From Tubulanus polymorphus (taxonomy: Eukaryota > Animalia > Nemertea): DNA of 64,000 nt. The DNA lies in assembly GCF_964204645.1 (NCBI RefSeq), contig NC_134030.1, positions 21,970,210 through 22,034,209 of the forward strand. Reading direction: 5' to 3'. The notes under the pieces are model-generated. The model was not told the origin of the DNA, did no database searches, and saw nothing but the letters and a program-made list of their open reading frames with translations. Position 1 is the stretch's first letter. Each line of letters opens with the position of its first letter. Of this stretch, positions 6,815 to 64,000 are shown piece after piece. A program made the position numbers and the translations under genes.

Positions 6815-9800
6815 ATGATGAACACACGTTTATTCGTAATAATCTACATAGTTTTATTAAAACTTGGAAACTTAAACAGCGCAGAAACATCTGGAAATAA
6901 GACGCATAATTCAAGTAAGTCACTCGAACCAATGATAGCTTTTCTGTTGTGTCGATTTCATAGATTTCTGTCGATGATAATTCATGTACCTGAGGTATTA
7001 CACGCGTGATGTCACAGATCGTTTCACCGTCGGTGTTGGTGTTTACCGTACATAGGTCTAGCTATACTAACAAATATGGGATTTATCAAGGGCCTGTCAT
7101 GTAAATAGTTTACCGAGAAGATGCTGCAGGCCCGTATGCTGCCTTTCTTTGTTGTGGGCAGCTCGCGAGTACCGTATAAGAAGCGTTTTGTGGGGATTCC
7201 CCAAGGAAACTTTGATCATTTAAAGCCGTCAGTTTGAATTCATTACTGGCTAATTTATGTATAACTGTAAACAAACGACTGTGGAGGACGATACGTGATG
7301 GGAAATGTAGTCTAAAAATTCGGAACTAGAGATTTTGCTGGGGGGGGGGTCACATTGTGGGAAAAGACCTCAATAGATTATTGGAAGCTTGTGCGTTTTA
7401 CTGTTTCATAGACTATTCATATTTATTCGTTTTCAGTGATTTACCCGAAGCCTGTTCCCAATGGAAAACCCGATATTAAAACACAAGGACAAACGATTGA
7501 ATATATTTGTAGAACTAGTGTTAAATATCCTACAGTTATATTCCAAAAGAAGAGAAGAGATTCAGAACAATGGGAAACAATTCCAGACGAACTGATTCGT
7601 ATAACTAGAAATGTGAAATATATTACTTCTGCTTCACTAGAATTCAAAGCAGATTTCAAACTGCACAATGGAACAACATTTAGATGTCTCGTTCTTAAGG
7701 AAGGCCAAACAGATTTTGATTATCTTCAGTTTGATCTAATCGTAGTTCATCGAACTGGTAAGTAACAGTTTTAAAATGTGAACCTTCCCAGTCTGGAATC
7801 CTGCTACTCAATAAACATCGAATCTATCAAAACAAATTAATATTGAAACACAGCGTCTCTGTTACTTTTAAATTAGTTCGCAGTCGATTGCATGAATTTA
7901 TAGTTTAGCAGCTACGTATCAAAAGTGCGTTTATTGTAGCGTATGACATGTACATTCGCTGCTATGTTATTTTGTATAATGTTCTATTTTTCACTCATAT
8001 TGTCTAATTTGTAGACCTTGAGTTTGTCAAATAAACTGTAAACTGTAAACTGAATGCATTCTGGAATTTATAGAAATGATTCTCAAATTGACGGCCATAC
8101 GACTCAGCGTGAAATTCATATTTCTGTTTAACGGATGAATATAGCCGACAGTTTAATTTGTTGTAGCTTCCTCTTTCATATACCCGTCATTTGTTCATCC
8201 ATTTCTATCTCCGCACAAACATATCTTCTTGTGTCAACTACTAATTTCAAGGTCGCTTGATGAGTTGTTGATTTTAAATTTTGTATATTTGATATCTAAA
8301 AACCTGAATTTCTTCATTTAAAAAGTAAATATTTGTCGCCCTCGTCACTTTTGGAATTGGGAATAAGGCTTTTTATTTATGTCTTTTTATTTAAAAAGGG
8401 AGGTAAAAATAATAAGTATCGGCCGTTCTTGTCACTTTCCCAAAAAGGGGTCGATGAGAAACAACCATATTTATTTGCGTGGCCTTAATGCACGCGTCAG
8501 TAAACTAACCAAACTAAACCAAACCACAAACAGTCAAAGTTACTTTCTACAGGTAATTGTTTTTCTCATTTCAGATTTGAATCAAATCCCGGCGACTGAA
8601 ATCAGTAAATCAGGGTCAGTATCTATTTCACTTAGCGCACTACATAAATCATATTCTATATGTAAATCATTTCTTTGTGGTCGATGTTTGTTTTGTGAAA
8701 TAATTTTGAATTGATATCTCACTTGTCTCATTGGCTTCCGATTAACAATTCACCTATCATTATTCATCTCATTTTTCACATTTTGCCACAAAAGGTAACA
8801 GTACGGGCAATTGCAAAATATGTGACCTCGATATCGCTACCACGAGCCCTGCCTTTTCACATCTGGGCCCAGTTGCACAGTCGTGACTTAAGTCCAAAAG
8901 TAGTCTTAAATCTTAAGACTAGTCTTAATTTCTTAGATTAGCTATAGAACTAAGTTGGTCTTAGACTGGTCTTAAGTCTAAGCTTTGACTATGCAACTGG
9001 CCTCTGTTCTGCTGATTTATCTTAATTGTAAATTTCGTCCTTTTCATTCAGAGTTCGTCTGCTTACTGCTGAAAATGTGGCCTCGAAAAACAAGGTCATT
9101 ATAAATTTAAGTAATAATCAAACTAACTTGTCAAATAAAGTTCCCCGGATCCCAGACACAGAGTCGAATTAAACCCACTGAACTGTGAACCTTGATTTAG
9201 GATATAAAAGCGAATTGAATTTTATAATATAAACTGAATGATTAATTGATTGATATTTGCAGCTTGTGTTGAGGTTTGATTCTATTCTGTTGGTTTCTAG
9301 TTTATACCCGCGAATTGTCATCCGGTATATTCTACATCCTTCGAGTTTTCCTTTTTTTCTTTCTCTTACTAAATCGGTATACAGACTGGACTGGACCACA
9401 AACCTGACCGGACCATGATGATAATTTACATCGCTTGTGCAGTTATCGGTTTTCTCCTCGTCATCGTTATCATCGTCATTTGCAGGTTTGTACGCAGTAA
9501 TCTCGGGCAGATTTCATATCTAAGATAATCCACCTATGACATCATATTAAAACGTGAAATAATTTGATAAATCAGTGACGTTTTCCAAAAAGATGTCTTC
9601 GTTCATAAATTTGTAACTACCTATGCGCCGATTACTGGCTGAGTCAATCTCAAATCAGCAGGAATAATTCAATATAATGACCGAAATATCCGAAATCTAA
9701 AATCTCTTCAACGCTTAAATTACCCATTTTTCAGACGCAGGCGATTGCCAGGTGAAGGTCGTGTGGAGGTTACGACACCGCAGGTACTCGACGTCTATGA

Positions 9801-10245
9801 CGAGTTGTATGATGACATAGATTCTGTTACTGTGACTGACAAACTGCACACCAGCGATCAGAAAGTTACTACAGATCCGTACGTGAATATCGAGACCGGC
9901 AACGACAAAGACACAGCTCCGTACATGGATATGGCAGCCGCGAAGGGTAAAGATACAACTTCATATATAGATATGGAAGCCGGGAAGGGCAAAGATACAA
10001 CTCCTTATATGGATATGGGACCCGGGATAGAAGAGGATACGTACAGGAGTACTGAAACCGGGAAGGACAAACACACAACTCCTTACACGAATACCGGAGC
10101 CGAGAAGCGCAAAGATAGACATAGTTACGTGAATACCGAAGCCGGAAAGGCGCGCCATTTGAAGAAAGATACTGATGAACCCGTGAAAGATGATGTTGAA
10201 CTTTATTCTTACGCTACTGTTCAATATACTCGCAATAGGCGTTAG
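6815..10245 (+). CDS. Gene A1: single-Ig-domain type-I membrane receptor with tandem tyrosine-motif cytoplasmic tail (~379 aa)
   Basis: Exons 6815-6914 (signal peptide MMNTRLFVIIYIVLLKLGNLNSAE...), 7437-7757 (Ig-like: EYIC...W...HNGTTFRC), 8575-8614, 9052-9094, 9301-9324 (stalk micro-exons, less certain), 9385-9485 (TM MMIIYIACAVIGFLLVIVIIVIC), 9735-10245 (RRRR stop-transfer, then Tyr repeats). Phases are compatible and total 1140 nt. Every splice site is conserved in the paralogue. Confidence 0.8.
8862..9003. mobile_element. Short MITE with GGCCCAGTTGCACAGTC-type TIRs (Tourist-like); paralogous copy 51740-51880; similar ends at 31140-31277 and 43037-43148
   Basis: Terminal inverted repeats GGCCCAGTTGCACAGTC / GACTATGCAACTGGCC; internal CTTAAG palindromes. 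Confidence 0.75.
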
Positions 10246-12022: not shown

Positions 12023-12207
12023 TGGTCGAATTAATACTAGGAATAGTACGTTAACTCATTCGTCTCCTAGGAATCGAATTGACGTTTCGTCTTCGTAGTT
12101 CTCAACTTCCGCGACGATTCTAAAATGAGAACTACTATACCGAAACGAAATTTCGATTCCTAGGTAGTTTAAGAAATACGATCTTATTCCTAGAATTAAT
12201 TGGGCCA
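12023..12207. mobile_element. Palindromic MITE-like element upstream of the B1 leader exon
   Basis: TGGTCGAATTAATACTAGGAATA...TATTCCTAGAATTAATTGGGCCA outer arms and CCTAGGAATCGAA...TTCGATTCCTAGG inner arms. Confidence 0.6.
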
Positions 12208-12298
12208 TCATATCACAAACCCCCAATCAGTCTAGTTTTCTGTATGTGATGATGATCTGAAGTTTGTGTCTTTATACCCAGGTAATGAATGAACCAAG

Positions 12299-15200
12299 AT
12301 GAAGAATCTATGGAGGAATCCGCAGAAGTGTTTAGTGATCTACGTGATTATACTGTTGAATCTCATGGCGAACAACAACAGCCCACAAGCGTTTAGAGTC
12401 AAGAGAAATACCGGTAAGACAACGTGAAAGAACATATCATTGAGTTTATATGGCGAATGTATTACATAAGATAAAACTTATCACCAGACTTTGGAAACTT
12501 GTATTTGAAATATCTGGGACAAAATGATAGTAGCTGAATAGTCCACTTGAACTGATACATTTACCTCGAATGAAAACCCACAATCTCTCAAGTGTTTTAC
12601 ATTTTACCTTAAACATTTTAACTATTCAATAATTGTATTTTATCTTCTAAAACTCCATCTGCACCCATCTCCATTCTTATACCCGGGTTATGCGTCTCCA
12701 CTACGCTCGCAACACGCCTTCAATGCTGAGTTTTCCGCAAAACCTGGGTTGTAGAAACCGTAGTTGAAAAAGAAGGGTCCACTCCTTATTTAACCACGTT
12801 CGCGTAAAACTTTTAGAATTTTTACTAGAAGTGTAGAAAGTAGACCCGCGTTCGGGTGCAACGAATGAACTTAAACTTGAACTACAGATTAAGAGAAATC
12901 CCACAATAAAATCAGCGAAATGAATTGAAATTTAGAAAAAGACGAGAATATATCTCGAGCAACGTTTCGGCTAAAACTTATGACCCAATCTATCAGTACA
13001 CGAGATAGATTTAACAAGATATTTACACAGGAATGTAACAAAGGAACTGAGTGAGTGATTGAAGTTAATAAAGATTAAAAACATAGACAAGGAAACAATA
13101 GTAGAAAGAGTTAGGTAATAGCAAACGGCAAACTAGGGGTAATCATACTTGTTGAGGTAAATTAAACACAAAACCCGAAAGTAAAACGAGGAGGTAAACC
13201 ACAGGGTAATCTAACAATCACAGAATACATCACAGCCTGTGTCTCAAAATCATAGATAATGCGTGTGAATATTAGATCTTAAAAACATCAAATCAGATTA
13301 TTGTTTATTTCTTGTCGAACCTCTTCAAACGGTGACAACTATCGGAAGACAATTTGCTTAAACAAGTCTGGGGCTCTAGTTGCTCTGAAGTCGGTTTAAG
13401 GTGAATGAAATTGAGATGTTAATTGGTCAATTCTGAACAATGGCTCTGACAGAAAGATTGCCATTTATTTCAGCACCTGATGGAGTTGTACTGGACAGTG
13501 TGAATGTTAATAGGGTACAAGATAATTACGTATATTGTTTATTTGATATTTCAGCACCTGATGGAGTTGTACTGGACAGTGTGAATGTATTACCGGGTAC
13601 ACCTATGTTACTGTCGCAGGAAGGTAAAACTGTTCGTATTACCTGCAAACAGAGGAGCTCTACAGCGACTGGTGTAGAATTCCAGCTACAAGTGAATAAT
13701 GGACCAGAAGGGACCTGGATTGCATTACCTACAGCATCAGCACCAGTTTGGGTTTTTCAGCCCGATGCTCGTAAAATGTATAAATGTGTGGCCATTAATT
13801 CAGCCGGAATTAAAGAAAGTCAGTTCTACCAATCAGATGTAATCAGTGAGTATGCATCACTTATCAAATAATGCTGGGAAAATAGAAAAAAAGTTTCCTG
13901 TGCACATGTTATATTTTTTCGTGCATATAACTTTTATTTCAGGTATAAAGATAAATGAAAACCCGTGTAAACTGCATGAATTCAAACCATCACTAACTTG
14001 TACTTGTAAAGCCACTAGTAAGATCGGTAATCCAATCATCAAAGTAAAATGGTATGCTGATGGATTTACTGAAGGATCAACGGATATTGATCAGATCCCC
14101 GATCAAGGCGTAAATACCCCGGTGAAAGATGGAGTTATCAACAGGAATCAGATGCGGTTTAATCTAATGCTGTACGCAATATTGATTCAATGTCGGTTAT
14201 GGAAGTATAATGGGATAGAGTTACCGAAACTAACACTTCAAGAACAAATACTACATCAAACTCCAATGAACGTTACGTGTAAGTTGGAGAATATTTTCAT
14301 TAGAGAATTTTCATACGATATCAGAGTGACAATAATGCATGTTACATCGTTTATTTTATTGGTAACTGCCCATAGTTGGAGATTTAAGAGTTACTATTTC
14401 ATAACGACTGGTGATCATGCCTATGAAATTCTTTCGTTTTAATATTTGGTTCCAAGAAGGTATTTCAAATACTGAAGCGAATTGTTAATAATAACATTAA
14501 AAGGACTAGAATATGAATGTGCATGTATTTGCTTTTGAAATCGAACCTACTAGAAAACGATTTCACCTTCTATGATTAGGCTTAAGATTTTGAGCCCACA
14601 TGGAAAAATTGCAGCGAAATCGGTTAAAATGTTGACATAAAAAGTTCGTTTCTGTAACAATTGTCGTCTTCGGGTATTCTTATGGCTATATCAGGGATTT
14701 TTAATTTGTAATATGGGACAAAGCTTCTTGGACCGGGACAATAGGATCACGCACAACTCACCAGAATAAAGGATTCTTTTCATGAGTGCGATAGATACGC
14801 CACCTATCGTTGATATGTATTGTTGCAAAAACAAATAAACTATATTACAATATAATTATGTCGGGAGTTACACCGTTATATTTCCGTCGATTCAAATTTC
14901 GACGCCCTTGATAAACACACATTCCTCGGAGCGAAAGTAATATTTTACCATGTTTTATGGACGGACGTTTCCTCACGTAAATCAACGATTTTGCACCGAT
15001 CAGTGAAATTGAAGTGGACAAACATGATATCATCCAAAAATGTATTTGCATCTTTATCTTTCAGATTTTCCCGATGAAATTCAAACACCAGATACTTTCA
15101 CCGGAGAACCTGACATTAGAAATGAAGGAGATGTTGTAGAATATACTTGTCGAACAGTGATAGGAAGACCCGATCCTACAGTGATATACCAACAGAAAAG

Positions 15201-18200
15201 AAGAGGTTCTGAACAATGGGAGCCAATTCCTGATCCACAACCTCGTAAAGTACCTCTCAAAATGGTTTTAAAAGGTTTTGACACGACGTACAAGTTCAAA
15301 GCTGATTTCAAACTGCACAATGGAACGTCATTTCGATGTGCTGTAAAGGAGAACCTTACGTTTCCAGAACCTCGACAATTTAATCCAATCATTGTTTATT
15401 GTAAGTAACAGTTTCTTTTTCGAATTCGAGAAATAAATAATTTTCCCTGCAACAATACAGACCCCAGTGGTAGTACAGACCTATCCACACATATAGCATG
15501 TCACAATGTAACCATGCTAAGCAGGAACATGGCAGAGTCTCGCGATGTCATCAGGTTCAAATCCCTGCCGAGGGAGGAACGTGGCAGAATCTCGCGATGT
15601 CATCAGGTTCGAATCCCTGCCGAGGGAGGAACGTGGCAGAGTCTCACGATGTCATCAGGTTCGAATCCCTGCCGAGGGAGGAACGTGGCAGAGTCTCACG
15701 ATGTCATCAGGTTCGAATCCCTGCCGAGGGAGGAACGTGGCAGAGTCTCACGATGTCATCAGGTTCGAATCCCTGCCGAGGATGATGGGTCTACTATGAC
15801 AGGGCTTAAGAACTGTGCTAGGTCAGATATTACTTTTACTAATGTTTTGTTTGTTTTTCAATCAGATTTTGCCGCACCAGTTTACAAGAAATCCAGTGAA
15901 AATGAAACAAATGCAGCGTATATTGTAACAGTTAATAGTTACCCATTGACTCAACAAGTTACATGTGACCCTCCAGCTGTCGTTCAAAAACTATCAAACT
16001 CTCAGTGGAATATAACGATACCTATCGTAAACAGTACCACAACTGACTATAGAGGGCGGTGTTTGGTTGATGGTATTAATGAAAGGGTTATTGATGTCGC
16101 TGGTTATCATCACACCGGTCCAACTGATGAACCAGGTAAGATTCCGGGTCACGACTGGATGAATTTTACATGAATTTGAAGATTCAAATGATTCAATTCC
16201 ATGACATTATAAAACTCGAGGCCATCATCTCTTAACTCGAAATCATTTCTACACAATCAAACAATTTACTTATGAAAGTCGTTATTTTCTAAATTGTCAC
16301 AAAACCTATTAATATATTTCAAAGTCTCAATTTACTAAGTCATTTGTCATTATTATTGGGTCTCATTTTACTAGGTGTAAGTCGTCATTCATTTAAAGCG
16401 TCACATACATACATATAACAAAAAAATAATTTTTGTATTTTACCTAAAGTGTAAATCATTTAGATTAGTCAGCACAGCGGAGGAGTCTCGTGACGTCATC
16501 AGATTTTAAATCCGTGCGCGATGACGTAATTCTCTGTGTCGTCAGAATTGAGCGTTTTCTATTATTATCTGTGAATTCATCACATTCAAATATTACACAA
16601 TGATTTAGCATCTTTAACTTTCTATCTTGAGGCTGTTTGACCCAATCAAGGAACAATTAATTTTCTCCCATTTTAAAAACAACTTATATACTTTATTCAG
16701 AGACTATTTGAGCTTTGAAATTAAGGAACAATTAATTTCTGTTTGACCTAGTTAATTATTCAATTAAATTGCTGTTACTTTTATCAATAGTTACAATGGA
16801 ACTATTTCTAGCTTTATATAATTCAATTCAATCGCATCACCGATTAGTTTGAATTTCCGTTTCAGATGCAGGAAATGGAGGAATAGTGGCTGGTGTTGTA
16901 ATCGGTATATTACTGATATTACTGATTCTAATAATACTGTTTATACTGTGGCGTCGTGGCTGCTGTAAGTTTTACATAAAACCATCAATAAATCTGAAAA
17001 ACAATAATAAACAAACTGCAGAAATGAAATACTCTATTAGGGGTAGAAAACCTAATGATGAACTGGTGGAAATTGTTAGTTCTATAATATTTCATATACA
17101 GAATGCTAGAAATCCAAAAGTAGTGTACACAGCTGGAAGAATTCAGGGGTCCCAAGGTGGCCAGATACAGTTCATTCTCAATTATCTGTTCAAATTTCAT
17201 TCATGCAATTGAATTCAAGAATGTTTGGAACTTAGAAGAACAGAATGTTATCATTTCTGGGATTCAGCACGGGTTGGGTCGTAGTTTCAGATGGCAGCAA
17301 ACATGAAATGTGCTACGACCAAACATTCACCGATTCCATAAAAATCATTTTGATAGAAACCGCCGGCATAGGTTTTCTTAGCCTCCAGGAGAAGCTACTA
17401 AGTAACATCGTTCTCTTCACAAATAACGGTGTTTGAAAAAGTATCCATTTTATAATGTTTAGCATCATTCAACTTTCAATCAATTTTCTAGACACAATAC
17501 GCGCATTATTCAAACCAGAATTTAGATGCACGAGACGCATTAAAAATCTAAAGCCAGAATATGCATAATGTTTATTTATTTTCGTCTGACATCGATCACT
17601 TTCAGATCTGAATCAGTGCGGTCTAAATAAAACATCGTTTTTATATCTATTGTAAAATGCAGCATTAATTGAATTATCTAATGGCGAATGAATTACTCGT
17701 AGATGCACAGTCTTCGGTACAGGCTCGATACAAGTCTCTGCGGGGTCATCAATCAACGTTGATAGGTTATGATTTCTTGCCTACGTTAGGTTCTGCATTT
17801 TCTCGTTGGGAAGTATCGTTAAGTTGTTGTGTGACGATAGTAATAAATTATCACATATGCCTACCGGGTATCGGTAATGAAAACTTGCGCCCGGTTCCTT
17901 GTCCCAGTTACCATTTATTGCCAACTAGAAGAAATTCCGTAAATCTCTGATTCCGAAAAATGACAGTACCGGTTTAAACTCGAAAAAGTTACGCAGTATC
18001 ATTGGTTCAATTGTCTCATGGCATTAGTATCCATGACTATCTTTAGTGGGTGGCTCCATGAATATCCAAATCACACTGTTTCTTTATTGGGTTGATTTGT
18101 CAGGTGAACGTGCATCGTGTAAATAAACAGTATTTCTGTTTTCTAATTCACAGTCACGTGTTTGGGTCCGAAATCTGAAGATGCGATTGAATTGTTGCGT

Positions 18201-21200
18201 TGGACAAGTGAAACCTGGTATGAAAAAGGTAAGATTCTCTCACATGATTTACTGCACATATTCTCAGATATCGGTTTGATAATTTTAGGTGTTGTTTTCT
18301 CTTTGTAGATCATGAGAATTGGGTGAAAACACGTGACCAACTGCAGCCGGGTATTTATAGAATTATTAACCCTTTATTTCTATAACATGTAGAATATCTC
18401 GCATGAATACAGTTCATAGTTTTAGAAATCATCCACTAATCATCTGAATGATATACAACTGATTTTGCTTCATTATCAAAACCGTAATTATCAATTTAAG
18501 TTTATGGTTAACAACGTAATTTTTGACTATTTTATCGTATGTTTTTGGTAGATGTTTAATGCAATTAACTGACAATTATTTCTATCTGTGAAGCACATTT
18601 ATAATAATGGCCTCTTATATTAACTCACTGGATACAATGGAAACACGTTTACGCAATGAAATAAACCAAATAATTTGGACCAAGAAACTTTTAGATTTTT
18701 CAGAAACTATTCCATATTCACGTACTAAATCCTGGACTTCACTTGTAGCAAGTGAGGATCCACCAGGTGCAAGGAGGCAATTCCTTGCTATTTTTAGGGA
18801 CTGAACTTTTCGTGAGAAATAAGAAAAAGCATGTGAAATCCCTGATAATGTGTTTGCCTAAGCGTTGTTGTCGTCGTTAACCGGCACTTTTTTCGGCAGT
18901 CCTCCAGTTCATGGTGTTTCATCGATCGTTCATTGATGTGTTTGGTTGAATGACTGGACTGGTTCCGGGTCACATGTACTCTGATCGTGCCTAGAAAACG
19001 TATCCACGCATCTAATTTTAAACAATTTTCTGCGGAAGAACGCCCACTAATTTGTGCACCCCTCCCTGAAATCCTGGATCTGCAGCTGTTCTGCGGCAAT
19101 AGAGGATTCCCATTGAAAATCAACTATACGCGAGAAACGTTTTTAGATGTCGTCTTTTTTCATGTTTATCTGTAGCTAATATTTGTGTTGTTTGTTTAAC
19201 AGTTAAAACTGAAGACTTTGAGGTCATTGAAAAGTCATTCAGTCCAGGTATATTATTCATTGTGATTTCATTTCAATAAAACAATATAAACTCACATGAT
19301 TCATCGATAAATCAACTACCTGTTTGTTAACATCGATGAATTCATTTAGAAAATTAATTTGTTGTCAATTTTTCTTTCTAGAAATTTTCAGAATAATTAA
19401 AGATGTTTACGGAACTGAGAATGATTGGGAGTTAACGAGAGATAAGGATAAACAAGGTAAGAGGAGTGAGTGGTAAGAGTAGTGAGTGGTAAGAGTAGTG
19501 AGTGGTAAGAGTAGTGAGTGGTAAGAGTAGTGACGACTCAGTTGCCGGAGGAAGAGCAGAACCGACTGATTGGTGCCCTGCATGTCTCTCTAAATATGAC
19601 ACTTCTGCCTCCTATCTTCATCCAGCAGTAATTCAAACTGTTTGATGCACAGTTTATTGGACTATTGAACAAATAATTTCTATAATTCATTTCAGCAATA
19701 GCTATCAGAGAATTCCTGTTTGGACAGTTATCAAGTGATCAAAGTAAGTAATCGTTTACCTATAGTTTGTTTTAAGTTTATGTACGCATGTGATGTATGT
19801 AAACATGCGCATGTGAGTTATGTGAACATGCACATGTGATTAATGTGTGCATTGACATTTGATTGATACATAGTAAGTTGTGAGTTGGGTAAACATGTTC
19901 ATGTAAGTTAACATGCACATGTGATTAGTTTACGTGTTTTAAGTTAACACAAGTTTCATCAATGTTTATATTTTCAGGTGTGTTAGATTTGGTGAAAGAA
20001 ATCCTAAGTAAGTTTACGAAACGACTCAATATTTCCTCTTCAACTCGAATCATCGATTCAAATGTGTTTGTTATTATCTGTTGACAGGAAAATACGTGAG
20101 AATAAACAATTTAAAAACGAAACTATCAAATGAGATCGGTAAGATTTGATTGTATACAGTTATTGGTGTATGAGTTTATTGATTATTATTCTACTGTCAA
20201 CACATTTTGTAAATGTATTACAGATACATTACTGAACAAGAAGAGGTCAATAGATGGCGCTGATGTAGTTTACAATAGAGATGAAGGTACATGATTATTT
20301 AGTGTTCAAATGAAATATTCAGCTTTGCTGATAGAAATGTAGCGAATTCTATTCAACATGGCCGCATGGCAGCCACTGAGAATAATCTATAAACCTGATA
20401 GAAGCGACCAGTTGGGAATTTGTTATAATTCAGTGTGTTATTTCGTGAAATGGAAAGTTACTCTAAATTTCTTTGCCTAAATTCGTACCGTTTTGGTCAA
20501 ATTGGATGCATCAAAATTTGTGATGGAAATTTCATCTTAAAAATGTCAGACTAGAGCTTCAGAAATACTCAAGTTACAACAAAATAATCAAATTTACAAT
20601 TGTTATTTAAGAAATAAGATGTGATATAAACTAGGGGTAATGATACAGCATGAAACAGAATTTCAATTAAACTAATTTCAAATCTATTTTTTCCGTGTTT
20701 CAGATGAAGTTCATGTTAGTTTTATGACGCAATCTAATGAAGAGAAAAAACCCCTGACAGACAAAGAGAAACAGTTCATCAGAGATGGTCAGTAAAACTA
20801 TGAATTCTATCTGAGTTCCAGTTTGATGTCGGGTTCACTACACAGTTACAGAGAGTCTTAAAAAGTGTTAAAAAAACTTACTGACGAAAATTTCCAACTT
20901 TTTGAAAAAATGTCTTCCGCATTTTTCAAGATTTATACAGATGTCTGTTAGTAATGATTAGTCATGTAGTGAACAGGGTTCAGTGATTCACTGTGTCACC
21001 AATATTTAGGAGTTATCTGTATTTATGGATTTGTTCACCCAGTCCTGAGAATGGTCGGTTCGCGGAGCTCCGTATACTGCCTATACTAAAGGGGTCGCGT
21101 TAGCGATATACCACTGACAAGGTTTTCAGTGAATGGATTTGCAAAATGAAATGAGTGCCAAAAGAGCAACTGCTCTGTGTGAATCACATTCAGCTATTTT

Positions 21201-27200: not shown

Positions 27201-28835
27201 AAAATACGTATATCACATATCATATCACGCCATACCACATCATTTATGCTTGTAAAATGTGATTTTGAAGGTGATGAGTTTTGTTTTACTTTTTATCACG
27301 AATTGATGCATTGCTTAATTTACGTTCTACTTCTATTTGTGATTTCAGAGGAATTAAATGAACAGGGAATCGTAGTTTATAGAAGTGAGTAAAAGTCAAT
27401 TTGTCTGATTTGAATTCTAATCTGTTCATCAATTCCATAGTTTTCCTGTTCCATAGTTACCCTGATCCCATAAACTCCTCACAAGAGACTCCCAACACTA
27501 GAATCATAACCCCTCAGTTTTTTTAAATTCAGATCTAAATCAAATTAAGTAAGAATTTTATAGTAAAAGTGAACTGTATGAATTTATCTGTTTAGATCTA
27601 ATTAATGTATATTTATTAGTTATTGTTGTTGTTCTGTTTTTCAGTAAAAGATGAAACAGCGAGTAAGTACTGATGACAACTTCCATGTTAAAATTTAGAT
27701 AAAAATATATATTTGTCATCTCCTGTTTTGAATAGTAGTGGTTCTTATATAGCGCTAAATCCAGTGAAACCGTTTTACAGATGATGAAAATACTTCCTTC
27801 AAAAGGAAGGATTGTGAAAGGAGAACATTTTGGTGTTTATAGTATTATCCAAAACCTATGATATGAGTAATATGCATAAGTAGTTTTTAGTTTGTGGTTG
27901 CGGTTACATGAACTTTTGAACTTTATTGTACCATGTGTTTTGTACCACGTGTTCCTGGTTTATCTTTGTATGTGTGAATCCTTACTTATCAATAGAACGT
28001 CATATAGTAAACACGTAGTCTCAATATTTCTTCTTCCACGCCGTTTTGTGTTGCTTACAAGCTCTTTTACAACACATGTTTCTCTCTCCCTGCAGTAATC
28101 TATTGTGTTTATTCTGTTACAGTGAGTAACATCAAACCAATTATTGCAGACAGAATCCAAACGGAATTTAAAGGTGAATACATTGTGTTTACTGTTAGGT
28201 GTTTCAATTAACAAATTTAATCGGTACCGAGAGTAAGAATGGTGGTCGACAGGTCCCGAGTTAAGGGTGAAGGTCGACTGTATTTTGTTGGAGGATATTT
28301 GACGCTGTAGCAGCATAAATAGTTTACATCATCAGACGATATTTTAGTAGTTTCTAATGAGCATTGTATAATTACAGATTCACTAGTGACTGTTTTAGAA
28401 GAGAAATGTCAAAAGGCTATCAGTTTGTGGCCATCAAAACACTGGGAATACGATATATCTCGCGCGAGTAAGTTCATTGTGAAATCAGTTTGTGATTTAT
28501 AATAGAATTCTATTGTATAAAAACTTGTCTATTGTTTATTACATATAGTGTCTGTACTCAGTGAATTTACCAGTAGAACTTTAAACACAAACACAGGTTA
28601 TTGGAAACAAGTCAAAGAATGTTTCGGTAAATAATAAATTCTTGTTTCACTGCTGATTCTTTTTTGATGATCTGATTTGTAAGGATGACCAATAATTGTT
28701 TGTTCTGTTTGAATAGGAGATGAAATTAACAGTGAAACAAATACAACTGAACTGACAGAAATAGGTGAATATCAAATTAACATATTACATATTATTTCAA
28801 GATTAACAAAAATTATTTTGAAAATTATTTATATA

Positions 28836-28910
<75 letters not shown>

Positions 28911-49771: not shown

Positions 49772-52700
49772 ATGATGAACACACGTTCGTTCTTGATAAT
49801 ATACACGATTTTATTACAACTTGGAAACTTAAACAGCGCAGAAACATCTGGAAATAAGACGCATAATTCAAGTAAGTCACTCGAATCAATGATAGCTTTT
49901 CTGTTGTGTCGATTTCATAGATTTCTGTCGATGATAATTCATGCACCTGAGGTATTACGCGCGTGACGTCACAGATAGTTTCACCGTCGGTGTTTGAGAC
50001 TCCCGTACATAGGTCTAGCTATACTAACAAATAGGGGATTTATCAAGGGCCTGTCATGTAAATAAATTACCAAGAATCTAAGATGTTGCAGGCCCGTATG
50101 CTGCCTTTCTTTGTTGTGGGTAGTTCTCGAGTACTGTATAGGAGGGGAGTGTTTTGTGGGGATTCCCCAAGAAAACTTTGATCACTAAAGTCGTCAGTTT
50201 GAATTCATTACGTGGCTAATTTATGTATAACTTTAAACAAACGACTGTGGAGGACGATACGTGATGGGAAATGTAGTCTAAAAATTCGGAACTAGAGATT
50301 TTGCTGGGGGGAGGGGGTCACGTGGTGGAAAAAGGACCTAAATAGATTATTCGAAGTTTGTGCGTTTTACTGTTTCATAGACTATTCATATTTATTCATT
50401 CGTTTTCAGTGATTTATCCAAAACCTGTTCCCGATGGAAAACCCGATATTAAAAGAGAAGGACAATCGATTGAATATATTTGTAAAACACGTGTTAAATA
50501 TCCTACAGTTATATTCCAACAGAAGAGAAGAGATTCAGAACAATGGGAAACAATTCCAGACGAACTGATTCGTATAACTAGAAATGTGAAACATATTACT
50601 TCTGCTTCACTAGAATTCAAAGCAGATTTCAAACTGCACAATGGAACAACATTTAGATGTCTCGTTCTTAAGGAAGGCCAAACAGATTTTGATTATCTTC
50701 AGTTTGATCTAATCGTAGTTCATCGAACTGGTAAGTAACAGTTTTAAAATGTGAACCTTCCCAGTCTGGAATCCTGCTACTAAATAAACATCGAATCTAT
50801 CAAAACGAATTAATATTGAAACACAGCGTCTCTGTTACTTTTAAATTACTTCGCAGTCGATTGCATGAATTTATAGTTTAGCAGCTACGTATCAAAAGTG
50901 CGTTTATTGTAGCGTATGACATGTACATTTTCATGCATTCTAGAATTTATAGAAATAATTCTCAATAAGACGGCCATACGACTCAGCGTGAAATTCATAT
51001 TTCTGTTTAACGGATATATAGCCGACAGTTTAATTTGTTGTAGCTTCCTCTTTCATATACCCGTCATTTGTTCATCCATCTCTAATCTCCATACAAACAT
51101 ATCTTCTTGTGTCAACTACTAATTTCAAGGTCGCTTGATGAGTTGTTGATTTTACATTATGTTTATTTGATATCTAAAAACCTGAATTTCTTCATTTAAA
51201 AAGTAAAAAATTGTCGCCCTCGTCACTTTTGGAATTGGGAATAAGGCTTTTTATTTATGTCTTTTTATTTCAAAAGGGATGTAAAAATAATAAGTATCGG
51301 CCGTTCTTGTCACTTTCCCAAAAAGGGGTCGATGAGAAACAACCATATTTATTTGCGTGGCCTTAATGCACGCGTCAGTAAACTAACCAAACACAACCCA
51401 ACCACAAACAGTCTAAGTTACTTTCTACAGGTAATTGTTTTTCTCATTTCAGATTTGAATCAAATCCCGGCGACGGAAATCAGTAAATCAGGGTCAGTAT
51501 CTATTTCACTTAGCGCACTACATAAATCATATTCTATATGTAAATCATTTCTTTGTTGTCGATGCTTTTTGTGAAATAATTATGAATTGATATCTCACTC
51601 ATCTCATTGGCTTCCGATTAACAGTTCACCTATCATTATTCATCTCAATTTTCACATTTTGCCACAAAAGGTAACAGTAAGGGCAATTGCAAAATATGTG
51701 ACCTCGATATCGCTACCACGAGCCCTGCCTTTTCACATCTGGGCCCAGTTGCACAGTCTTGGCTCAAGTCCAAAAGTAGTCTTAAATCTTAAGACTAGTC
51801 TTAATTTCTTAGATTAGCTATAGAACTAAGTTGGTCTTAGACTGGTCTTAAGTCTAAGCCATGACTTTGCAACCGGCCTCTGTTCTGCTGATTTATCTTA
51901 ATTGTAAATTTCGTCCTTTTCATTCAGAGTTCGTCTGCTTACTGCTGAAAATGTGGCCTCGAAAAACAAGGTCATTATAAATTTAAGTAATAATCAAACT
52001 AACTTGTCAAATATAGTCCCCGGATCCCAGACACAGAGTCGAATTAAACCCACTGAACTGTGAACCTTGATTTAGGATATAAAAGCGAATTGAATTTTAT
52101 GATATAAACTGAATGATTAATTGATTGATATTTGCAGCTTGTGTTGAGGTTTGATTCTATTCTGTTTGTTTCTAGTTTATACCCGCGAATTGTCATCCGG
52201 TATATTCTACATCCTTCGAGTTTTCCTTTTTTTCTTTCTCTGACCAAATCGGTTTACAGACTGGACTGGACCACAAACCTGACTGGACCATGATGATAAT
52301 CTACATCGCTTGTGGAGCTATCGGTTTCCTCCTCGTCATCGTTATCATCGTTGTCATCGTCGTTTGCAGGTTTGTACTCAATAATCTCAGGCAGATTTCA
52401 TATCTAAGATAATCCCCCTATGACGTCATATTAAAACGTGAAATAATTTGATAAATCAGTGACGTTTCCCAAAAAGATGTCTTCATTCGTAAATTTGTAT
52501 CTACCCATGCGCCGATTACTGGCTGAGTCAATCCCAAATCAGCAGGAATAATTCAATATCATGACCGAAATATCCGAAATCTAAAATCTCTTCACCGCTT
52601 AAATAACCCATGTTTCAGACGCAGGCGATTGCCGGGTGAAGGTCGTGTGGAGGTTGCGACACCGCAGGTACTCGACGTCTATGACGAGTTGTATGATGAC

Positions 52701-53129
52701 ATAGATTCTGTTACTGTGACTGACAAACTGCACACCAGCGATCAGAAAGTTACTACAGATCCGTACGTGAATATTGAGGCCGGGAACGGCAAAGACACAA
52801 CTCCGTACATGGATATGGCAGCCGCGAAGGGTAAAGACACAGCTTCATATATAGATATGGAAGCCGGGAAGGGCAAAGACACAACTCCTTATATGGATAT
52901 GGGACCCGGGATAGAAGAGGATACGTACAGGAGTACGGAAACCGGGAAGGACAAACACACAACTCCTTACACGAATACCGGAGCCGAGAAGGACAAAGAT
53001 AGACATAGTTACGTGAATACCGAAGCCGGAAAGGCGCGCCATTTGAAGAAAGATACTGATGAACCCGTGAAAGATGATGTTGAACTTTATTCTTACGCTA
53101 CTGTTCAATATACTCGCAATAGGCGTTAG
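49772..53129 (+). CDS. Gene A2: paralogue of A1
   Basis: Exons 49772-49871, 50410-50730, 51453-51492, 51928-51970, 52176-52199, 52260-52369 (TM with in-frame 9-nt insertion), 52619-53129. Same structure as A1, open frame. Confidence 0.8.
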
Positions 53130-54394: not shown

Positions 54395-54918
54395 TGCCAG
54401 GACTGGTGGGTGAACCACTACCAGGTCTAGATGAACCGCTGCTAGGACTGGGTGAACCACTGCCAGGACTGGATGAACCACTGCCAGGACTAGGTGAACC
54501 ACTGCCAGGACTGGGTGAACCACTATCAGGACTGGATGAACCACTGCCAGGACTGGATGAACCACTGCCAGGACTAGGTGAACCACTGCTAGGACTGGAT
54601 GAACCGCTGCCAGGACTGGATGAACCACTGCCAGGACTGGGTGAACCACTACCAGGACTGGATGAACCACTACCAGGACTGGAGGAACCACTACCAGGAC
54701 TGGGTGAACCACTACCAGGACTGGGTGAACCGCTGCAAGGACTGGGTGAACCGCTGCCAGGACTGGGTGAACCACTACCAGGACTGGGTGAACCACTGCC
54801 AGGACTGGGTGAACTACTACCAGGACTGGGTGAACCGCTGCCAGGACTGGGTGAACCACTACCAGGACTAGGTGAACCACTGCCAGGACTGGGTGAACCA
54901 CTACCAGGACTGGGTGAA
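54395..54918. repeat. 21-bp minisatellite (CCAGGACTGGGTGAACCACTR)n, ~25 units, open on both strands
   Basis: Reads (PGLGEPL)n on + and (SGSPSPG)n on -; present only upstream of B2. Confidence 0.95.
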
Positions 54919-55957: not shown

Positions 55958-58900
55958 ATGAACAACTGGATCCGTTTGTTAATTCTACTGCTGGAAATCT
56001 CGTTCAATTCAGAAGCTGCATCGATACGAAATAAGAGAAATACTGGTGAGTTAAAATGATGAACTACTTTTAAACTGCAGCGTCCGTTTTTATAGACTGG
56101 TATTTCAGCACCTGATGGAGTTGTATTGGACAGTGTGAATGTATTACCGGGTACAAGAATATTACGTATATTGTGTATTTGATATTTCAGCACCTGATGG
56201 AGTTGTACTGGACAGTGTGAATGTATTACCGGGTACAAGAATATTACGTATATTGTATATTCGATATTTCAGCACCTGATGGAGTTGTACTGAACAGTGT
56301 CAATGTATTACCGGGTACAAATATATTACTGTCGCAGGAAGGTAAAACTGTTAGTATTACCTGTAAACAGAGCAGCTCTACAGCGACTGGTGTAGAATTC
56401 CAGCTACAAGTGTATCATGGAGGGACCTGGACTGCATTACCTACAGCATCAGCACCAGTTTGGGATATTGTACTTGACGCTGGAAACATCTATAAATGTG
56501 TGGCCACTAACTCGGCAGGAATAAAGGGAAGTCACATCTATGAATCAGATGTGATCAGTGAGTATGGTGACAATTTGAACTCTAAGAATCGGCTTGTCAC
56601 GTGATAATTTATTTCTCCTCTGCAACTGAACCTAATTTCAATATTGCTGGGATAGGCTGAAAATAAGCCATGATTATAATTTCCCACAATCAGTTCAGAA
56701 AATGGCGAATAGATCGTGACGTAATTGAATATATGTTTGATCTTCGTTTCGGCGTTAAATTCATTGTCATCTTCAGACAAATTCAAACGTTGACTCTACA
56801 AGAACTTATCGTCTTTTCTGAACTGATTGACAGATCTCTGCTACTGACTCGGATGACAATTACTAAACCAGTAGCCTTCATACATTTACTGTTCGTTGTC
56901 GGTTGTCTGACAATACATGTATTTTTGTGCCAAATTCCAACGCTCTTATTCTCTGTGGAAACAAGTCCGCATATCCTTTCATTCAGCACTTATCAAATAA
57001 TGCTGGGAAAAATAGAAGAAAAGTTTCCTGTGCACTTGGTATTTTTTTGTATATAATTTGTATTGTAGGTATAAAGATAAATGAAAACCCGTGTAAACTG
57101 CATGAATTCCAATCACTGGCTTGTACTTGTAAAGCCACTAGTAAGATCGGTAATCCAAACATCAAAGTAAAATGGTATGCTGATGGATTTGCTGAAGGTT
57201 CAACGGATATTGATGAGATCCCCGATCAAGGCGTAAATACTCCGGTGAAAGATGGAGTTATCAACAGGAATCAGATGCGGTTTAATTTAATGCTGTACGC
57301 ATTATTGATTCAATGTCGGTTATGGAAGTATAATGGGATAGAGTTGCCGAAACTAACACTTCAAGAACAAATACTACATCAAACTCCAATGAACGTTACG
57401 TGTAAGTTGTATAATATTTTCATAAGAGAATTTTCATACGATATCAGAGTGACAATAATGCATGTTACATCGTTTATTCTATTGGTAACTGCCCATAGTT
57501 GGAGATTTAAGAGTTACTATTTCATAACGACTGGTGATAATGCTTATGAAATGTTTTCAAATTCTTTCGTTTTAATATTTGGTCCCAAGAAGGTATTTCG
57601 AGTACCGAAGCGAATTGTTAATAATAACATTAAAAGGACTAGAATATGATTGTGCATGTATTTGCTTTTGAAATCGAACCTACTAGAAAACGATTTCACC
57701 TTCTATGATTAGGCTTAAGATTTTGAGCCCACATGGAAAAATTGCAGCGAAATTGGTAAAAATGTTGACATAAAAAGTTTTTTTTCTCTAACAATTGTCG
57801 TCTTCGGGTATTCTTATGGCTATATCAGGGATTTTTAGTTTGTAATATGGGACAAAGCTTCTTGAACCGGGACAATAGGATCACGCGCAACTCACCAGAA
57901 CAAAGGATTCTTTTCATGAGTGCGATAGATACGCCACCTATCGTTGATATGTATTGTTGCAAAAACAAATAAACTATATTACAATATAATTATGTCGGGA
58001 GTTACACCGTTACATTTCCGTCGATTCAAATTTCGACGCCCTTGATAAACACACATTCCGCAAGTAATATTTTACCATGTTTTATGGACGGACGTTTCTT
58101 CGATTTTGCACCGATCAGTGAAATTGAAGTGGACAAACATGATATCATCCAAAAATGTATTTGCATCTTTATCTTTCAGATTTTCCCGATGAAATTGAAA
58201 CACCAGATACTTTCACCGGAGAACCTGACATTAGAACTGAAGGAGAAGTTGTAGAATATACTTGTAGAACAGTGATAGGAAGGCCCGATCCTACAGTGAT
58301 ATACCAACAGAAGAGAAGAGGTTCTGAACAATGGGAGCCAATTCCTGATCCACAACCTCGTAAAGTACCTCGCAAAATGGGTTTAAAAGGTTTTGACACG
58401 ACGTACAAGTTCAATGCTGATTTCAAACTGCACAATGGAACGTCATTTCGATGCGCTGTAAAGGAGAACCTTACGTTTCCAGAACCTCAGCAATTTAATC
58501 AAATCATTGTTCATTGTAAGTAACAGTTTCTTTTTCGAATTCGAGAAATAAATAATTTTCCCTGCAACAATACAGACCCCAGTGGTAGTGCAGACCTATC
58601 CACACATATAGCATGTCACAATGTAACCATGCTAAGCAGGAACATGACAGAGTCTCGCGATGTCATCAGGTTCGAATCCCTGCCGAGGGAGGAACGTGGA
58701 AGAGTCTCACAATGTCATCAGGTTCGAATCCCTGCCGAGGGAGGAACATGGCAGAGTCTCACGATGTCATCAGGTTCGAATCCCTGCCGAGGGAGGAACG
58801 TGGCAGAGTCTCACGATGTCATCAGGTTCGAATCCCTACTGAGAGAAGATGGGTCTACTATGACAGGGCTTAAGAACTGTGCTAGGTCAGATATAACTTT

Positions 58901-61900
58901 TACTAATGTTTTGTTTGTTTTTCAATCAGATTTTGCTGCACCAGTTTGCAAGAAATCCAGTAAAAATAAAACAAATGCAGCGTATATTGTAACAGTAAAT
59001 AGTTACCCATTGACTCAACAAGTTACATGTGACCCTCCAGCTGTCGTTCAAAAACTATCAAACTATCAGTGGAATATAACGATACCTATCGTAAATAGTA
59101 CCACAACTGACTATAGAGGGCAGTGTTTGGCTGACGGTATTAATGAAAGGGACATTAATGTCACTGGTTATCATCACGCCGGTCCAACTGATGAACCAGG
59201 TAAGATTCCGGGTCACAACTGGGTAAAATGATTTAATTCCATTGAAACATGATAAAACTCGAGTCCATCATCTCTTAACTCGAAATCATTTCTACACAAT
59301 CAAACAATTTACTTATGAAAGTCGTTATTTTGATAAATTGTCACAAAATAACCTATTAATATATTTCATAGTCTCAATTTACTAAGTCGTACTGGAGTTG
59401 TCTCTATCATTGGGTCTCATTTTACTAGGTGTAAGTCGTCATTCATTTGAGTCGTCACAATTCGTATTCGAATCAGCCACCAGTATTTTACCTAACCTGT
59501 AACTCAATTAGATTAGTCAGTACAGCGGATGAGTCTTATGGGAAATCCGTGCGCGATGACGTAATTCTCTGTGTCGTCCGAACTGAATGTATTTTTTGTG
59601 AATATATCACATTCAAATATTTCGTTATGATTTAGCATCTTTAACTTTCTATCTTGAGGCTGCTTGACCCAATCAAGGAACAATTAATTTTCTCCCATTT
59701 CAAAAACAACTTATTTACTTCATTTAGAGACAATTTGAGCTTTGAAAGTTAAGAAGCAGTTACTTTTTGCTTGACCTATTTAATTATTCAATTCAATTGC
59801 TGTTGTTTTTATCAATAGTTACAATGGAACTATTTCTAGCTTTATATAATTCTATTCAATCGCATCACTGATTTGTTTAAATTTCAGTTCCAGAAGAAGG
59901 GACTGGGGGAATAGTGTTTGCTGTAATCAGTATACTGATATTACTGATTCTGATAATACTGTTTATACTGTGTCTTTGTGGTTGCTGTAAGTTTTACATA
60001 AAACCATCATTTAATCTGAAAAACTATGATAAACAAACTGCAGAATCAGAATACTGTGTTATTTCTCATTGACAGTGCGGTGCAGAAAACCTGATGATGA
60101 ACTGTGTAGATGTGGAAATTGTAAGTTATGTAATAATTCAAATAAAGAATGCTAGAAATTGAAAATAGTGCATAAGGCCGAATGTATTCTAGAGCCCTAA
60201 GATAACCAGATACAGTTGATCCTCAATTATCTGTCCACATTTTTAATCTCGGGACCCTAGTTGCGCAGTATCATTCAAAAAGTGTTCGTAAACTATTAAT
60301 CTGGTCTTAAGTTGTTAGTTCGGCTTCAAAACTAAAACTGTTTTCCCCTGACAAAACCGGTCTTTGCAGTGGCAGATAACTGAGAGTTCATGAGGTCTGA
60401 AATCAGTCACACTTCTAGATTATGCTTAAAATTGCATACATGGGCTTAAAGAAACAACACAATTTTGTGTGCTTGCGTTTGACAAAAGATGATGATTCAA
60501 AAAATGATTGTATTGTTTTTGTTTTTGTTTTCAGCACTGAATTTCAATAGTATAAGCCGTGAACTAATGATTTGTAATTGTCGCACCGAGGACTCGTCGG
60601 ACGATGAACTATGTGTTTGTTGTTGCTGTAAGTGTCATAGAAAAATACCATCGTAGAATCGTAGAAAGGATTATCGCAAATTAGAATAATTTGTTTGTTT
60701 GTTTTTAGTGACTTGCAAATTACCTGCTGCCGATGAACCTGATAATGAGGATGATTCCTCAGATGAACTGTGTCATTGTTGCTGCTGTGAGTTCTATATA
60801 TAAACTGATAAAGATTAATAGTCAGTAACTGTAGAATAAACGGTTGTATTATTTTCTATTTGCAGTGGTGTTGAGAAGGGAGCCGTGTACATGTAATTAC
60901 TGTAAGTTTTATTAACATTGAAAACATTGATGATTAATCCTGCAAAATTAACTGTTATCGTCATTGGATATTCACGAATTCAAGAATGTTTGGAACTTAG
61001 TAGAACAGAATGTTATCATTTCTGGGATTCAGCGCGGGTTGGGTCGTAGTTTCAGATGGCTGCAAACATGAAATGTTGCTACGACCAAACATTCACCGGT
61101 TCATTAAAAATCATTTTGATAGAAACCGCCGCCATAGGTTTTCTTAGCCTCCAGGAGAAGCTACTATGTAACATCGTTCTCTTCACAAATCCATTTTATA
61201 ATGTTTAGCATCATTCAACTTTCAATCAATTTTCTAGACACAATACGCGCATTATTCAGACCAGAATTTAGGTGTACGAGACGCATTAAAAATCTAAAGC
61301 CAGAATATGCATAACGTTTATTTATTTTCGTCTGACATCGATCACTTTCAGATCTGAATCAGTGCGGTCTAAATAAACCGTCATTTTTATATCTATTGCA
61401 CAATGCAGCATTAATCAAATTATATAATGGCTAATCAGTAGCGAATGAATTACTCGTAGATGCAGTGTCTTGGGTACAGTCTCGATACAAGTCACTGCGG
61501 GGTCACAAATCAACGTTGATAGGTTAAGATTACTTGTCGACGTAGGTTCTCCATTTTTCTCGTTGGGAAGTATCGTTACGTTGTTGGGTGACGATAGTAA
61601 TAAATTATCACATATGCCCACCGGGTATCGGTAATGAAAACTTGCGTCCGGTGCCTTGTCCCAGTTACTATTTATTGCAAACTAGTAGAAATTCCGTAAA
61701 TCCGTGATTCCGAAATAGTACCGGTTTAAACTCGAGAAAGTTACGCAGTATCATTGGTTCAATTATCTCATAGCATTAGTATCCATGACTATCTTTAGTG
61801 GGTGGCTCCAACAATATCCAAATCACACTGTTTCTTTATTGGGTTGATTTGTAAGGTGAACGTGCATCATGTAAACAAACAGTATTTCTGTTTTCTAATT

Positions 61901-63970
61901 TACAGTCACGTGTTTGCGTCCGAGACCTGAAGATGTGATTGAATTGTTGCTTTGGACAAGTGAAACCTGGTATGAAAAAGGTAAGATTCTCTCACATGAT
62001 TTACTGCACATATTCTCAGATATCGGTTTGATAATTTTAGGTGTTGTTTTCTCTTTGTAGATCATGAGTATTGGGTGAAAACACGTGACCAACCGCAGTC
62101 GGGTATTTATAGAATTATTAACCCTTTATTTCTTTCATGAATACAGTTCATAGTTTTAGAGCTCATCCACTAATCATCTGAATGATATACAACTGATTTT
62201 GCTTCATTATCAAAACCGTAATTATCAATTTAAGTTTATGGTTAACAACGTAATTTTTGACTATTTTATTGTATGTTTTTGGTAGAATGCAATTAACCGA
62301 CAATTATTTCTATCTTTGAAGCACATTTGTAATAATGGCCTCCTATATTAACTCACTGGATACAATGGACACTCGTTTACGCAATGAAATAAACCAAATA
62401 ATTTGGACCAAGAAACTTTTAGATTTTTCGGAAACTATTCCATATTCACGTACTAAATCCTGGACTTCACTTGTAGCACGTGAGGATCCACCAGGTGCAA
62501 GGAGGCAATTCCTTGCTATTTTTAGAGTCTGACCTTTTCGTGAGAAAGAAGAAAAAGCATGTGAAAATCCCTGATAATGTGTCGGCCTAAGCGTTGTTGT
62601 CGTCGTTAACCGGCGCTTTTTTCGGCAGTCCTCCAGTTCATGGTGTTTCATCGATCGTTCATTGATGTGTTTGGTTGAATGACTGGACTGGTTCCGGGTC
62701 AGACGTATAGTCTGATCGTGCCTAGAACGCGTCACCACGCATCTAATTTTAAAACGTTTCCCGCGGGAGGATACCCACTAATTTAACCCTCCCTCAAATC
62801 CTGGATCCGCCACGTAAGATGCGGCAATTGAGGATTCCCATTGAAAATCAACTATACACGAGAAACATTTTTGGATGTCGTTTTTTCATGTATATTTGTA
62901 GCTAATATTTGTGTTGTTTTGTTTAACAGTTAAAACTGGAGACTTTGAGGTCATTGAAACATTCAGTCCAGGTATATTTGATATTTATTGTAATTTCATT
63001 TCAATAAAACAATATAAACTCAGATAATTCAGTTATAAATCAACTACTTGTTCGTAACGTCGATGAATTCATTTAAACAATTAATTCATTGTCAATTTTT
63101 CTTTCTAGAAATTGTTAGAATAATTGTCGATGTTTACGGAACTGAGAATGATTGGATGATAACGAGAGATAAGGATAAACAAGGTAAGAGGAGTGATGAC
63201 TCAGTTGCCAGGGTAAGAGCCAAACCGGCTGATTGGTTTATTGCAACCCGGGGCCGGGTTAATAGACTGGTATTAACTTTAAACCCGGGGTTAGTTTAAT
63301 TAATTTTCAATTAAGTTAGCCCCCGGGTTAAAGATAATACCAGTCTATAAAACCGGGTCCTGCATACAATACTGTACCGGAATATAACACTTCCCCGGGC
63401 CTCCTATCTTCACCCAACAGTAATTCAAACTGTTTGATGCACAGGTTTTTTTTATTATTGAAAACAATGCTTTCTATATTTCATTTCAGCAATAGCTATC
63501 AGAGAATTCCTGTTCCAACAGTTATCACATGATGAAAGTAAGTAATTGTTACCTATAGTTAAAGCTATGTACATCACATGTGCTTTATGTGAATATGCAC
63601 ATATGAATTCAGTTGACATGCACATGTGAGTTATATGCACATGTTCATGTTATTATTTGTTTTACATTCATGAGTAATGCATGCATGTACATGTGAATGA
63701 TACTTACATGTGAACATGTGCATGTGAGTTTTAACTGCGCATATGGTTTGTTTACATGCACATGTGTTTAAGTTTAAGTAGAGTTTGATCAATGTCTATG
63801 TATTTTCAGGTGTGTTAGATTTGGTGAAAGAAATCCTAAGTAAGTTTACGAAATGACTCAGTATTTCCTCTTCAACTCGAATCATGGATTCAAATGTGTT
63901 TATAATTATCTGTTGACAGGAAAATACTTTAGAATAAAGAATTTAAAAACGAAACTATCAAATGAGATCG
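55958..63970 (+). CDS. Gene B2: 5' part of the next gene B paralogue (runs off the window)
   Basis: Leader 55958-56045 (MNNWIRLLILLLEISFNSEAASIRNKRNT). Ig-like exons 56273-56557, 57069-57401, 58180-58515, 58930-59199. TM 59888-59986. Cys-rich exons 60076-60120, 60535-60627, 60709-60786, 60866-60901. Tail exons 61906-61980, 62061-62102, 62930-62971, 63109-63183, 63490-63537, 63810-63839, 63920-63970. All phase 1, and all internal exons are multiples of 3. Confidence 0.78.
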
Positions 63971-64000
63971 GTAAGATTTGATTGAATTCAGTTATTGATT

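Follow-up and report, generated by a model that had tools for sequence, protein, structure and literature searches.

We analyzed a 64,000-nt stretch of the genome of the nemertean Tubulanus polymorphus (hereafter the window; C6:21.97-22.03 Mb) that lies inside a tandem array of immunoglobulin (Ig) receptor genes. Two types of genes, A and B, alternate head to tail on the plus strand of the window in the order B0 (3' end), A1, B1, A2, and B2 (start), as an earlier note on this DNA had described. Comparison of the window with itself resolved the alternation as a direct repeat of 43 kb, the main blocks of which are 88-95% identical in DNA. With the units outside the window, which were mapped by position, the main array comprises 10 A and 12 B genes alternating over C6 21.68-22.10 Mb. 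Exons resembling the third domain (D3) of the B ectodomain number at least 68 genome-wide. The depth of DNA reads from another individual over the A-B stretch was mostly 43-66x, or 6-9 times the single-copy level (~7x expected, from 1,934 Mb over 268 Mb). A read depth so far above the single-copy expectation in another individual indicates that the multiplicity is real and, together with the 10 A and 12 B genes in tandem, rules out two uncollapsed alleles.

A conserved single-copy adhesion orthologue was also ruled out, as no match from outside Tubulanus rose above the generic Ig level. The best HMMER matches were uncharacterized RefSeq proteins of T. polymorphus, followed, among the named top matches, by hemicentin-like proteins, and the protein searches returned no orthologue outside this species. 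Nor does any of the 17 papers listed for T. polymorphus address these genes in its title or abstract. The locus is a lineage-restricted, multi-copy cluster of Ig receptors that share an extracellular module and differ in their tails.

Gene A1 (6815..10245, plus strand) codes for a protein of 372 amino acids in six exons with canonical GT-AG junctions and is represented in RefSeq by the A-type models P0010 and P0098. The exons encode a signal peptide (6815-6914), an Ig domain (7437-7757), a stalk (8575-8614 and 9052-9094), a transmembrane (TM) segment (9385-9485), and a tyrosine-containing tail of 168 amino acids (9735-10245). The 12 tyrosines of the tail exon, with three YxxM and three YxN motifs, are consistent with the phosphotyrosine-type tail predicted earlier. 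Gene A2 (49772..53129, plus strand) is 92% identical to A1 in the Ig domain and 96% in the tail. More generally, the A copies are 92-98% identical to each other, and all 10 copies in the array keep an open frame.

The ectodomain and TM segment of gene B1 (12299..16964, plus strand; RefSeq LOC141906946) include a leader with a furin-type RVKR site (12299-12413), four domains (D1, 13555-13845; D2, 13943-14278; D3, 15065-15400; D4, 15866-16135), and the membrane span (16866-16964). The 5' part of B2 (55958..64000, plus strand) begins with an intact leader (RNKR, 55958-56045) and continues with D1 (56273-56557), D2 (57069-57401), D3 (58180-58515), D4 (58930-59199), and a TM segment (59894-59986). 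The D1-D2 and D2-D3 GT-AG joints of B are present in an RNA-like run (X8). One contig of this run joins the end of D1 (13845) to its start (13555), which fits either back-splicing or paralogues in which D1 exons follow one another.

D1 and D3 of B belong to the immunoglobulin superfamily. In paralogues both domains match Pfam Ig_2/C2-set_2 at E values of 3e-7 to 1e-4, passing the cut-off only in the multi-repeat protein P0001. ESM Atlas also returned Ig matches, and the predicted D1 and D3 structures match Ig chains at middling Z scores (6.8-7.8). The canonical cysteine pair is retained in D1-D3. The confidence of the ectodomain model (predicted local distance difference test, pLDDT) is 42 and falls below 50 in D2 and most of D4 (Ig versus Fn3-like fold); Foldseek returned no match for this model with E below 0.001.

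The Ig domain of A is homologous to D3 of B. The motifs quoted in support of this claim in the earlier note are present, and the A domain is 50-51% identical to B1 D3 in amino acids and ~70% in DNA. Both exons are also followed by the same 14-nt intron start, GTAAGTAACAGTTT, found after A1 (7758..7771, plus strand) and again at 15401, 50731, and 58516; these four exact occurrences in the window compare with none in 100 shuffles. The conserved intron start holds an acceptor-like AACAG six bases in, and an 11-mer of it is retained at 23 of 30 loci despite exon divergence to 50%. The likeness claimed between the A and B1 leaders is present but weak (DNA alignment score of 30, reached by 2 of 300 shuffles), and the B2 leader belongs to a different class.

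Several repeats accompany the B ectodomain exons. An 82-bp unit tandemly repeats the D1 acceptor and first codons, with two copies in B1 (13466-13601) and three in B2 (56098-56329); the joint between units also occurs in more than 300 reads of the other individual. A 52-bp minisatellite in the D3-D4 intron differs in copy number between B1 (15523-15781) and B2 (58638-58849). A block upstream of B2 and specific to it contains a 21-bp minisatellite (54393-54918) open in several frames, including a minus-strand frame rich in serine, proline, and glycine, with no visible splice signals.

Cytoplasmic tails of B and the NACHT-bearing paralogues

The cytoplasmic tail of B1 (18154..44335, plus strand) is encoded by ~58 symmetric phase-1 micro-exons of 18-156 nt (median 48) that together specify ~1,000 amino acids. 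Strong acceptor-donor pairs with a length divisible by three make up 46 of 54 on the plus strand and 6 of 14 on the minus strand, with phase 1 predominating. The reconstructed B1 chain has 63 exons and 1,517 amino acids with no internal stop. It is 95% identical over the alignment to LOC141906946, which has three additional exons and lacks two. A module of 15 exons is duplicated inside the tail (25239-31112 and 31342-43375, plus strand; 70% amino acid identity). Searches of Pfam, PDB sequences, ESM Atlas, and 5.8 billion proteins found no homologue of the tail outside T. polymorphus.

The cysteine-rich, helical, PDZ-ended tail that the earlier note assigned to B holds in part. Cysteine-rich exons follow the TM segment of B2 (starts at 60076, 60535, 60709, and 60866, plus strand), ahead of tail micro-exons from 61906, but are missing from B1. 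The AlphaFold model of the tail is helical but of low confidence (pLDDT 37). A terminal exon with the PDZ-type end GTQV is present in 10 copies, all in the main array, including B1 (46426..46550, plus strand) and B0 (RefSeq LOC141906794 type), whose last micro-exons (1290..4173, plus strand) conclude with a class I PDZ-type GTQV exon at 4049-4173. However, the penultimate exon of B1 (44864..44909, plus strand) has a shifted acceptor that leads the RefSeq isoforms into a premature stop, and all three end early at KDKAI. Hence, B1 may be without the PDZ-type end that B0 keeps.

Other features of the tail region concern splicing and repeats. Two near-identical neighboring micro-exons (31790-31840 and 32171-32218), only one of which is used by RefSeq, are candidates for mutually exclusive splicing. 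A candidate B1 exon at 18704-18766 has good splice sites and is absent from RefSeq; its B2 counterpart (~62421-62492) has a mutated acceptor and an in-frame AG 9 nt upstream. A tail intron of B1 contains a 2.8-kb satellite (35204-38001) with a ~14-bp unit and strong strand skew. On the minus strand at 42400-42750, within a B1 intron, degenerate open frames give the impression of a retroelement remnant.

Four RefSeq paralogues of B have the B ectodomain and TM segment followed by a NACHT domain and an LRR-like region. By position, six B ectodomains are each followed, 6-27 kb downstream and on their own strand, by a single NACHT-LRR exon of ~930 amino acids. In these paralogues it takes the site of the GTQV terminal exon. 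A micro-exon of the helical module precedes the NACHT exon at four loci, three of these six and one on C19 where the ectodomain is represented by D3 fragments only, and the RefSeq model P0110 has the full architecture Ig-TM-module-NACHT-LRR. The NACHT domain scores 53.5 bits in Pfam (cut-off 26.7) with Walker A and B motifs intact; NLRC4_HD2 and LRR_14 are sub-threshold only. The B0 and B1 models are without NACHT, and no NACHT exon was found anywhere in the main array. The idea that the B terminal exon is a remnant of the NACHT exon was rejected, as it has no DNA match at the NACHT loci.

The ectodomains of NLR-type and NACHT-less B genes are 79-84% identical to B1 and interleaved in the D3 tree, within an overall identity of 76-96% among B paralogues. 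By sequence, the B genes of the window appear to be NACHT-less members of a surface Ig-TM-NACHT-LRR family, in which the NACHT-bearing paralogues qualify as NLRs and the window genes do not. The closest contrast of the kind "same outside, different inside" sets B paralogues that carry NACHT-LRR against those that lack it, rather than A against B. The proposal of an undescribed invertebrate immune complex stands insofar as the cluster is lineage-restricted and absent from the literature found, but it had missed that B appears to belong to a family of surface NLRs.

The phase-1 tail exons of the B family are interchangeable, as a gene can carry the helical module, the NACHT-LRR exon, both, or a short tail. 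The NACHT domain of one Ig-TM gene clusters with models lacking Ig and TM (100/100), and this grouping across architectures suggests that the NACHT exon moved more than once. An NLR clade without Ig or TM (P0112-P0122; on C8, C9, C32, C56, and others) has the same single NACHT-LRR exon and short, repetitive N-termini with no recognized effector domain.

A receptor of comparable design, AjNLRC4, is known in the sea cucumber, where this membrane Ig-NACHT protein binds microbes and drives phagocytosis (PMC8699970). As predicted for the NACHT-bearing B paralogues, it is a single chain with Ig outside the cell, a membrane anchor, and NACHT on the cytoplasmic side. AjNLRC4 contains two TM segments but lacks an LRR, whereas the B paralogues have one TM segment, four or more Ig-like domains, an LRR-like region, and many family members; the B genes of the window differ further in having no NACHT. 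No AjNLRC4-like match was seen in the NACHT search, so the two surface receptors are likely of independent origin.

Divergence and exchange among copies

In the D3 tree, the D3 domains of all B genes group in a single tight clade (100/100) that excludes the more diverse A-type domains. Thus, the A/B split is old. This topology rules out a recent origin of A from B, as A is not nested within B, and the partial duplication of B that the earlier note had invoked to explain A is not supported; the root of the tree is too distant to give the direction of the split. Outside the array, a diverged A-type gene (46-66% identical to A1) immediately precedes a B-type gene at nine more loci. A third class of genes at C6 20.43-20.57 Mb (P0013, P0016, and P0023) encodes D3 and D4 only, with a short hydrophobic end. 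Its Ig clusters with the Ig of the adjoining A-type gene (100/96), which suggests local exchange. The RefSeq model P0011, on a 16.5-Mb contig, combines N-terminal ubiquitin-protease-like motifs with an A-type Ig domain and is probably a fused gene model.

Among B copies, average identity is 82% in D1 and D2, 89% in D3, and 92% in D4. The nearest neighbor of a B copy changes from domain to domain, yielding mosaic genes. For example, the B1 tail is 98-100% identical to that of a copy carrying a different D1 class, and D1 distances do not run in parallel with those of the tail (Mantel p 0.10 and 0.29). Conservation is higher in the ectodomain exons than in the sequence flanking them (p 0.01). The divergence of the tail micro-exons equals that of the flanking introns (0.24 vs 0.20, micro-exons not significantly faster, p 0.19), and their omega estimates (0.73, 1.03, and 2.0) have intervals that all span 1. 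The tail exons are near neutral at the protein level while their frame and splice sites are kept.

Interpretation of the A-B unit

What is established is that A and B adjoin and co-duplicate, with A near-constant and B variable and mosaic. On balance, we read the A-B unit as a young, lineage-specific cassette of immune-type receptors, a reading to which we give slightly better than even credence. In its favor are the shared array and the nine diverged A-B pairs, the contrast between near-constant A and mosaic B, the NACHT-LRR exons behind B ectodomains, the precedent of AjNLRC4, and M1a/M2a site models that place 5-14% of B codons at omega 2.9-4.6, most strongly in D2 (p 3e-6) and D3 (p 9e-5). 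B would sense variable outside ligands, A would be a co-expressed partner that docks PI3K and Grb2, and the NACHT-less B proteins would scaffold or tune a pathway triggered by the NACHT-bearing paralogues. The cassette would multiply by unequal crossing-over. Through D1 and D2, B would engage variable ligands outside the cell, with the surfaces of microbes or parasites as the likeliest targets, and would cluster. Once tyrosine-phosphorylated, the tail of A could dock PI3K p85 (YxxM) and Grb2 (YxN) to drive actin remodeling, uptake, or survival signaling. The NACHT-bearing B genes would contribute NLR oligomerization, and the NACHT-less B genes of the array could be scaffolds, modulators, or decoys of the NLR pathway.

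Several observations weigh against the cassette reading. A-type genes occur without B at C9 4.2-5.1 Mb and next to the short D3-D4 genes at C6 20.4-20.5 Mb, so co-duplication may reflect proximity. The RNA-like run covers B exons and nothing on A, as contigs that show presence rather than absence. The splice from Ig to NACHT comes from RefSeq models and same-strand colinearity, not from reads. Whole-domain dN/dS of B is below 1 (0.46-0.75), and gene conversion can inflate the M1a/M2a site test.

The earlier note had likened the locus to the classical paired Ig receptors. Vertebrate families of this kind (SIRP, CEACAM, Siglec, KIR, LILR; PMC3533184) are likewise clustered, exchange sequence among their copies, and join related ectodomains to different tails. 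Yet a motif scan found no immunoreceptor tyrosine-based inhibitory (ITIM), activation (ITAM), or switch (ITSM) motif in the A and B tails, and no TM segment of A or B has a charged residue. The Tubulanus tails are also long, B carries three extra domains and NLR tails in its family, and the genes follow a strict two-gene periodicity. A and B fall outside the definition of paired receptors because they share a single domain at ~50% identity rather than similar ectodomains and lack ITIM, ITAM, and charged TM residues.

Gene A finds an analogy in chains of the CD28/ICOS/DAP10 type, which are single-pass proteins with one Ig or a short ectodomain and docking motifs for PI3K and Grb2. The resemblance of A to these YxxM chains (single-pass, one Ig, PI3K/Grb2 motifs) is by analogy only: A is not homologous to them, carries between 3 and 12 repeated motifs, and has an uncharged TM segment. 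In plants, sensor/helper NLR pairs and truncated NLRs are adjacent, co-inherited immune genes, one variable and one conserved. In Tubulanus, by contrast, the conserved partner is no NLR, and the two genes, which lie head to tail, both encode Ig receptors of the cell surface. A bolder form of the cassette reading, which we hold only tentatively and consider unlikely, would make A and B a two-chain surface receptor that pairs a constant phosphotyrosine adaptor with a variable Ig sensor from an NLR family. With tails of three kinds (a putative helical effector module, NACHT-LRR, or neither) swapped as phase-1 cassettes and NACHT-less copies serving as tuners or decoys, such a receptor would represent, at the cell surface, what sensor/helper NLR pairs are in plants.

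It is just as unlikely, in our view, that the genes encode independent competing receptors with no A-B complex, with the functional pairs being B paralogues with opposite tails and A hitch-hiking in the duplicated block. The similarity and interleaving of NLR-type ("alarm") and NACHT-less ("quiet or decoy") B ectodomains suit this explanation, as do the A genes without B on C9. However, the A-before-B order recurs in the nine older, diverged pairs, none of the 10 array copies of A has lost its open frame, and neither tail has an inhibitory motif.

Allorecognition of the Alr type, or gamete recognition, is less probable still. Under this explanation polymorphic Ig ectodomains would recognize particular alleles in trans, and A would supply the signaling. 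Hydractinia Alr (10.1101/2022.03.04.482883) likewise has clustered Ig genes with shuffled exons, distal domains that vary, and tails that have diverged further than the ectodomains, a likeness of layout only. Alr proteins have V-set/I-set/Fn3-like domains and ITAM/ITIM in many tails (10.1101/2022.03.04.482883), whereas the Tubulanus family keeps the canonical cysteine pair in D1-D3, has neither motif, and is associated with no known fusion or rejection phenotype. No Alr protein was among the named top HMMER matches, which involved no direct profile comparison with Alr. Only 307 of 4,819 reads of the other individual are at least 99% alike, but ten or more paralogues would by themselves be expected to produce such divergence, which is no measure of allelic polymorphism. 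Tubulanus is solitary and thus offers no context for colony fusion, and the NACHT-LRR tails indicate innate defense.

Equally improbable are neuronal, epithelial, or glandular adhesion or identity receptors (nephrin, Dscam, or protocadherin-like) that would use PI3K/Grb2 docking and PDZ scaffolds. The generic C2/I-set Ig likeness, YxxM/YxN tail, PDZ-type end, and furin-type prodomain site would all be at home in such proteins, but no orthologue was found outside T. polymorphus, and adhesion genes of this kind do not typically show rapid turnover, selected sites, or fusions to NACHT-LRR. We give very little credence to the view that a few functional genes expanded in tandem and that the expansion is for the most part neutral and decaying, with drifting NACHT-less B copies: neutral-looking omega intervals, intron-like divergence of the tail exons, and the early stop from the shifted B1 acceptor agree with it, but ~58 exons retain phase, splice sites, and open frames, the ectodomain exons surpass their flanks in conservation, and B is spliced in RNA.

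To our knowledge, almost no work on immunity in nemerteans has gone beyond Toll/Imd and complement. Judged from its sequences, the A/B family appears to be a lineage-restricted variant of known immune-receptor designs. It brings together variable Ig receptors in clusters, co-receptor tails with YxxM, and surface NLRs, three designs that are usually apart. A module of ~500 amino acids with no known homologue sits where NLR effector domains sit, and the family is a clear case of receptor tails assembled by exon-cassette swapping. These genes are testable candidates for recognition diversification in a spiralian without adaptive immunity.

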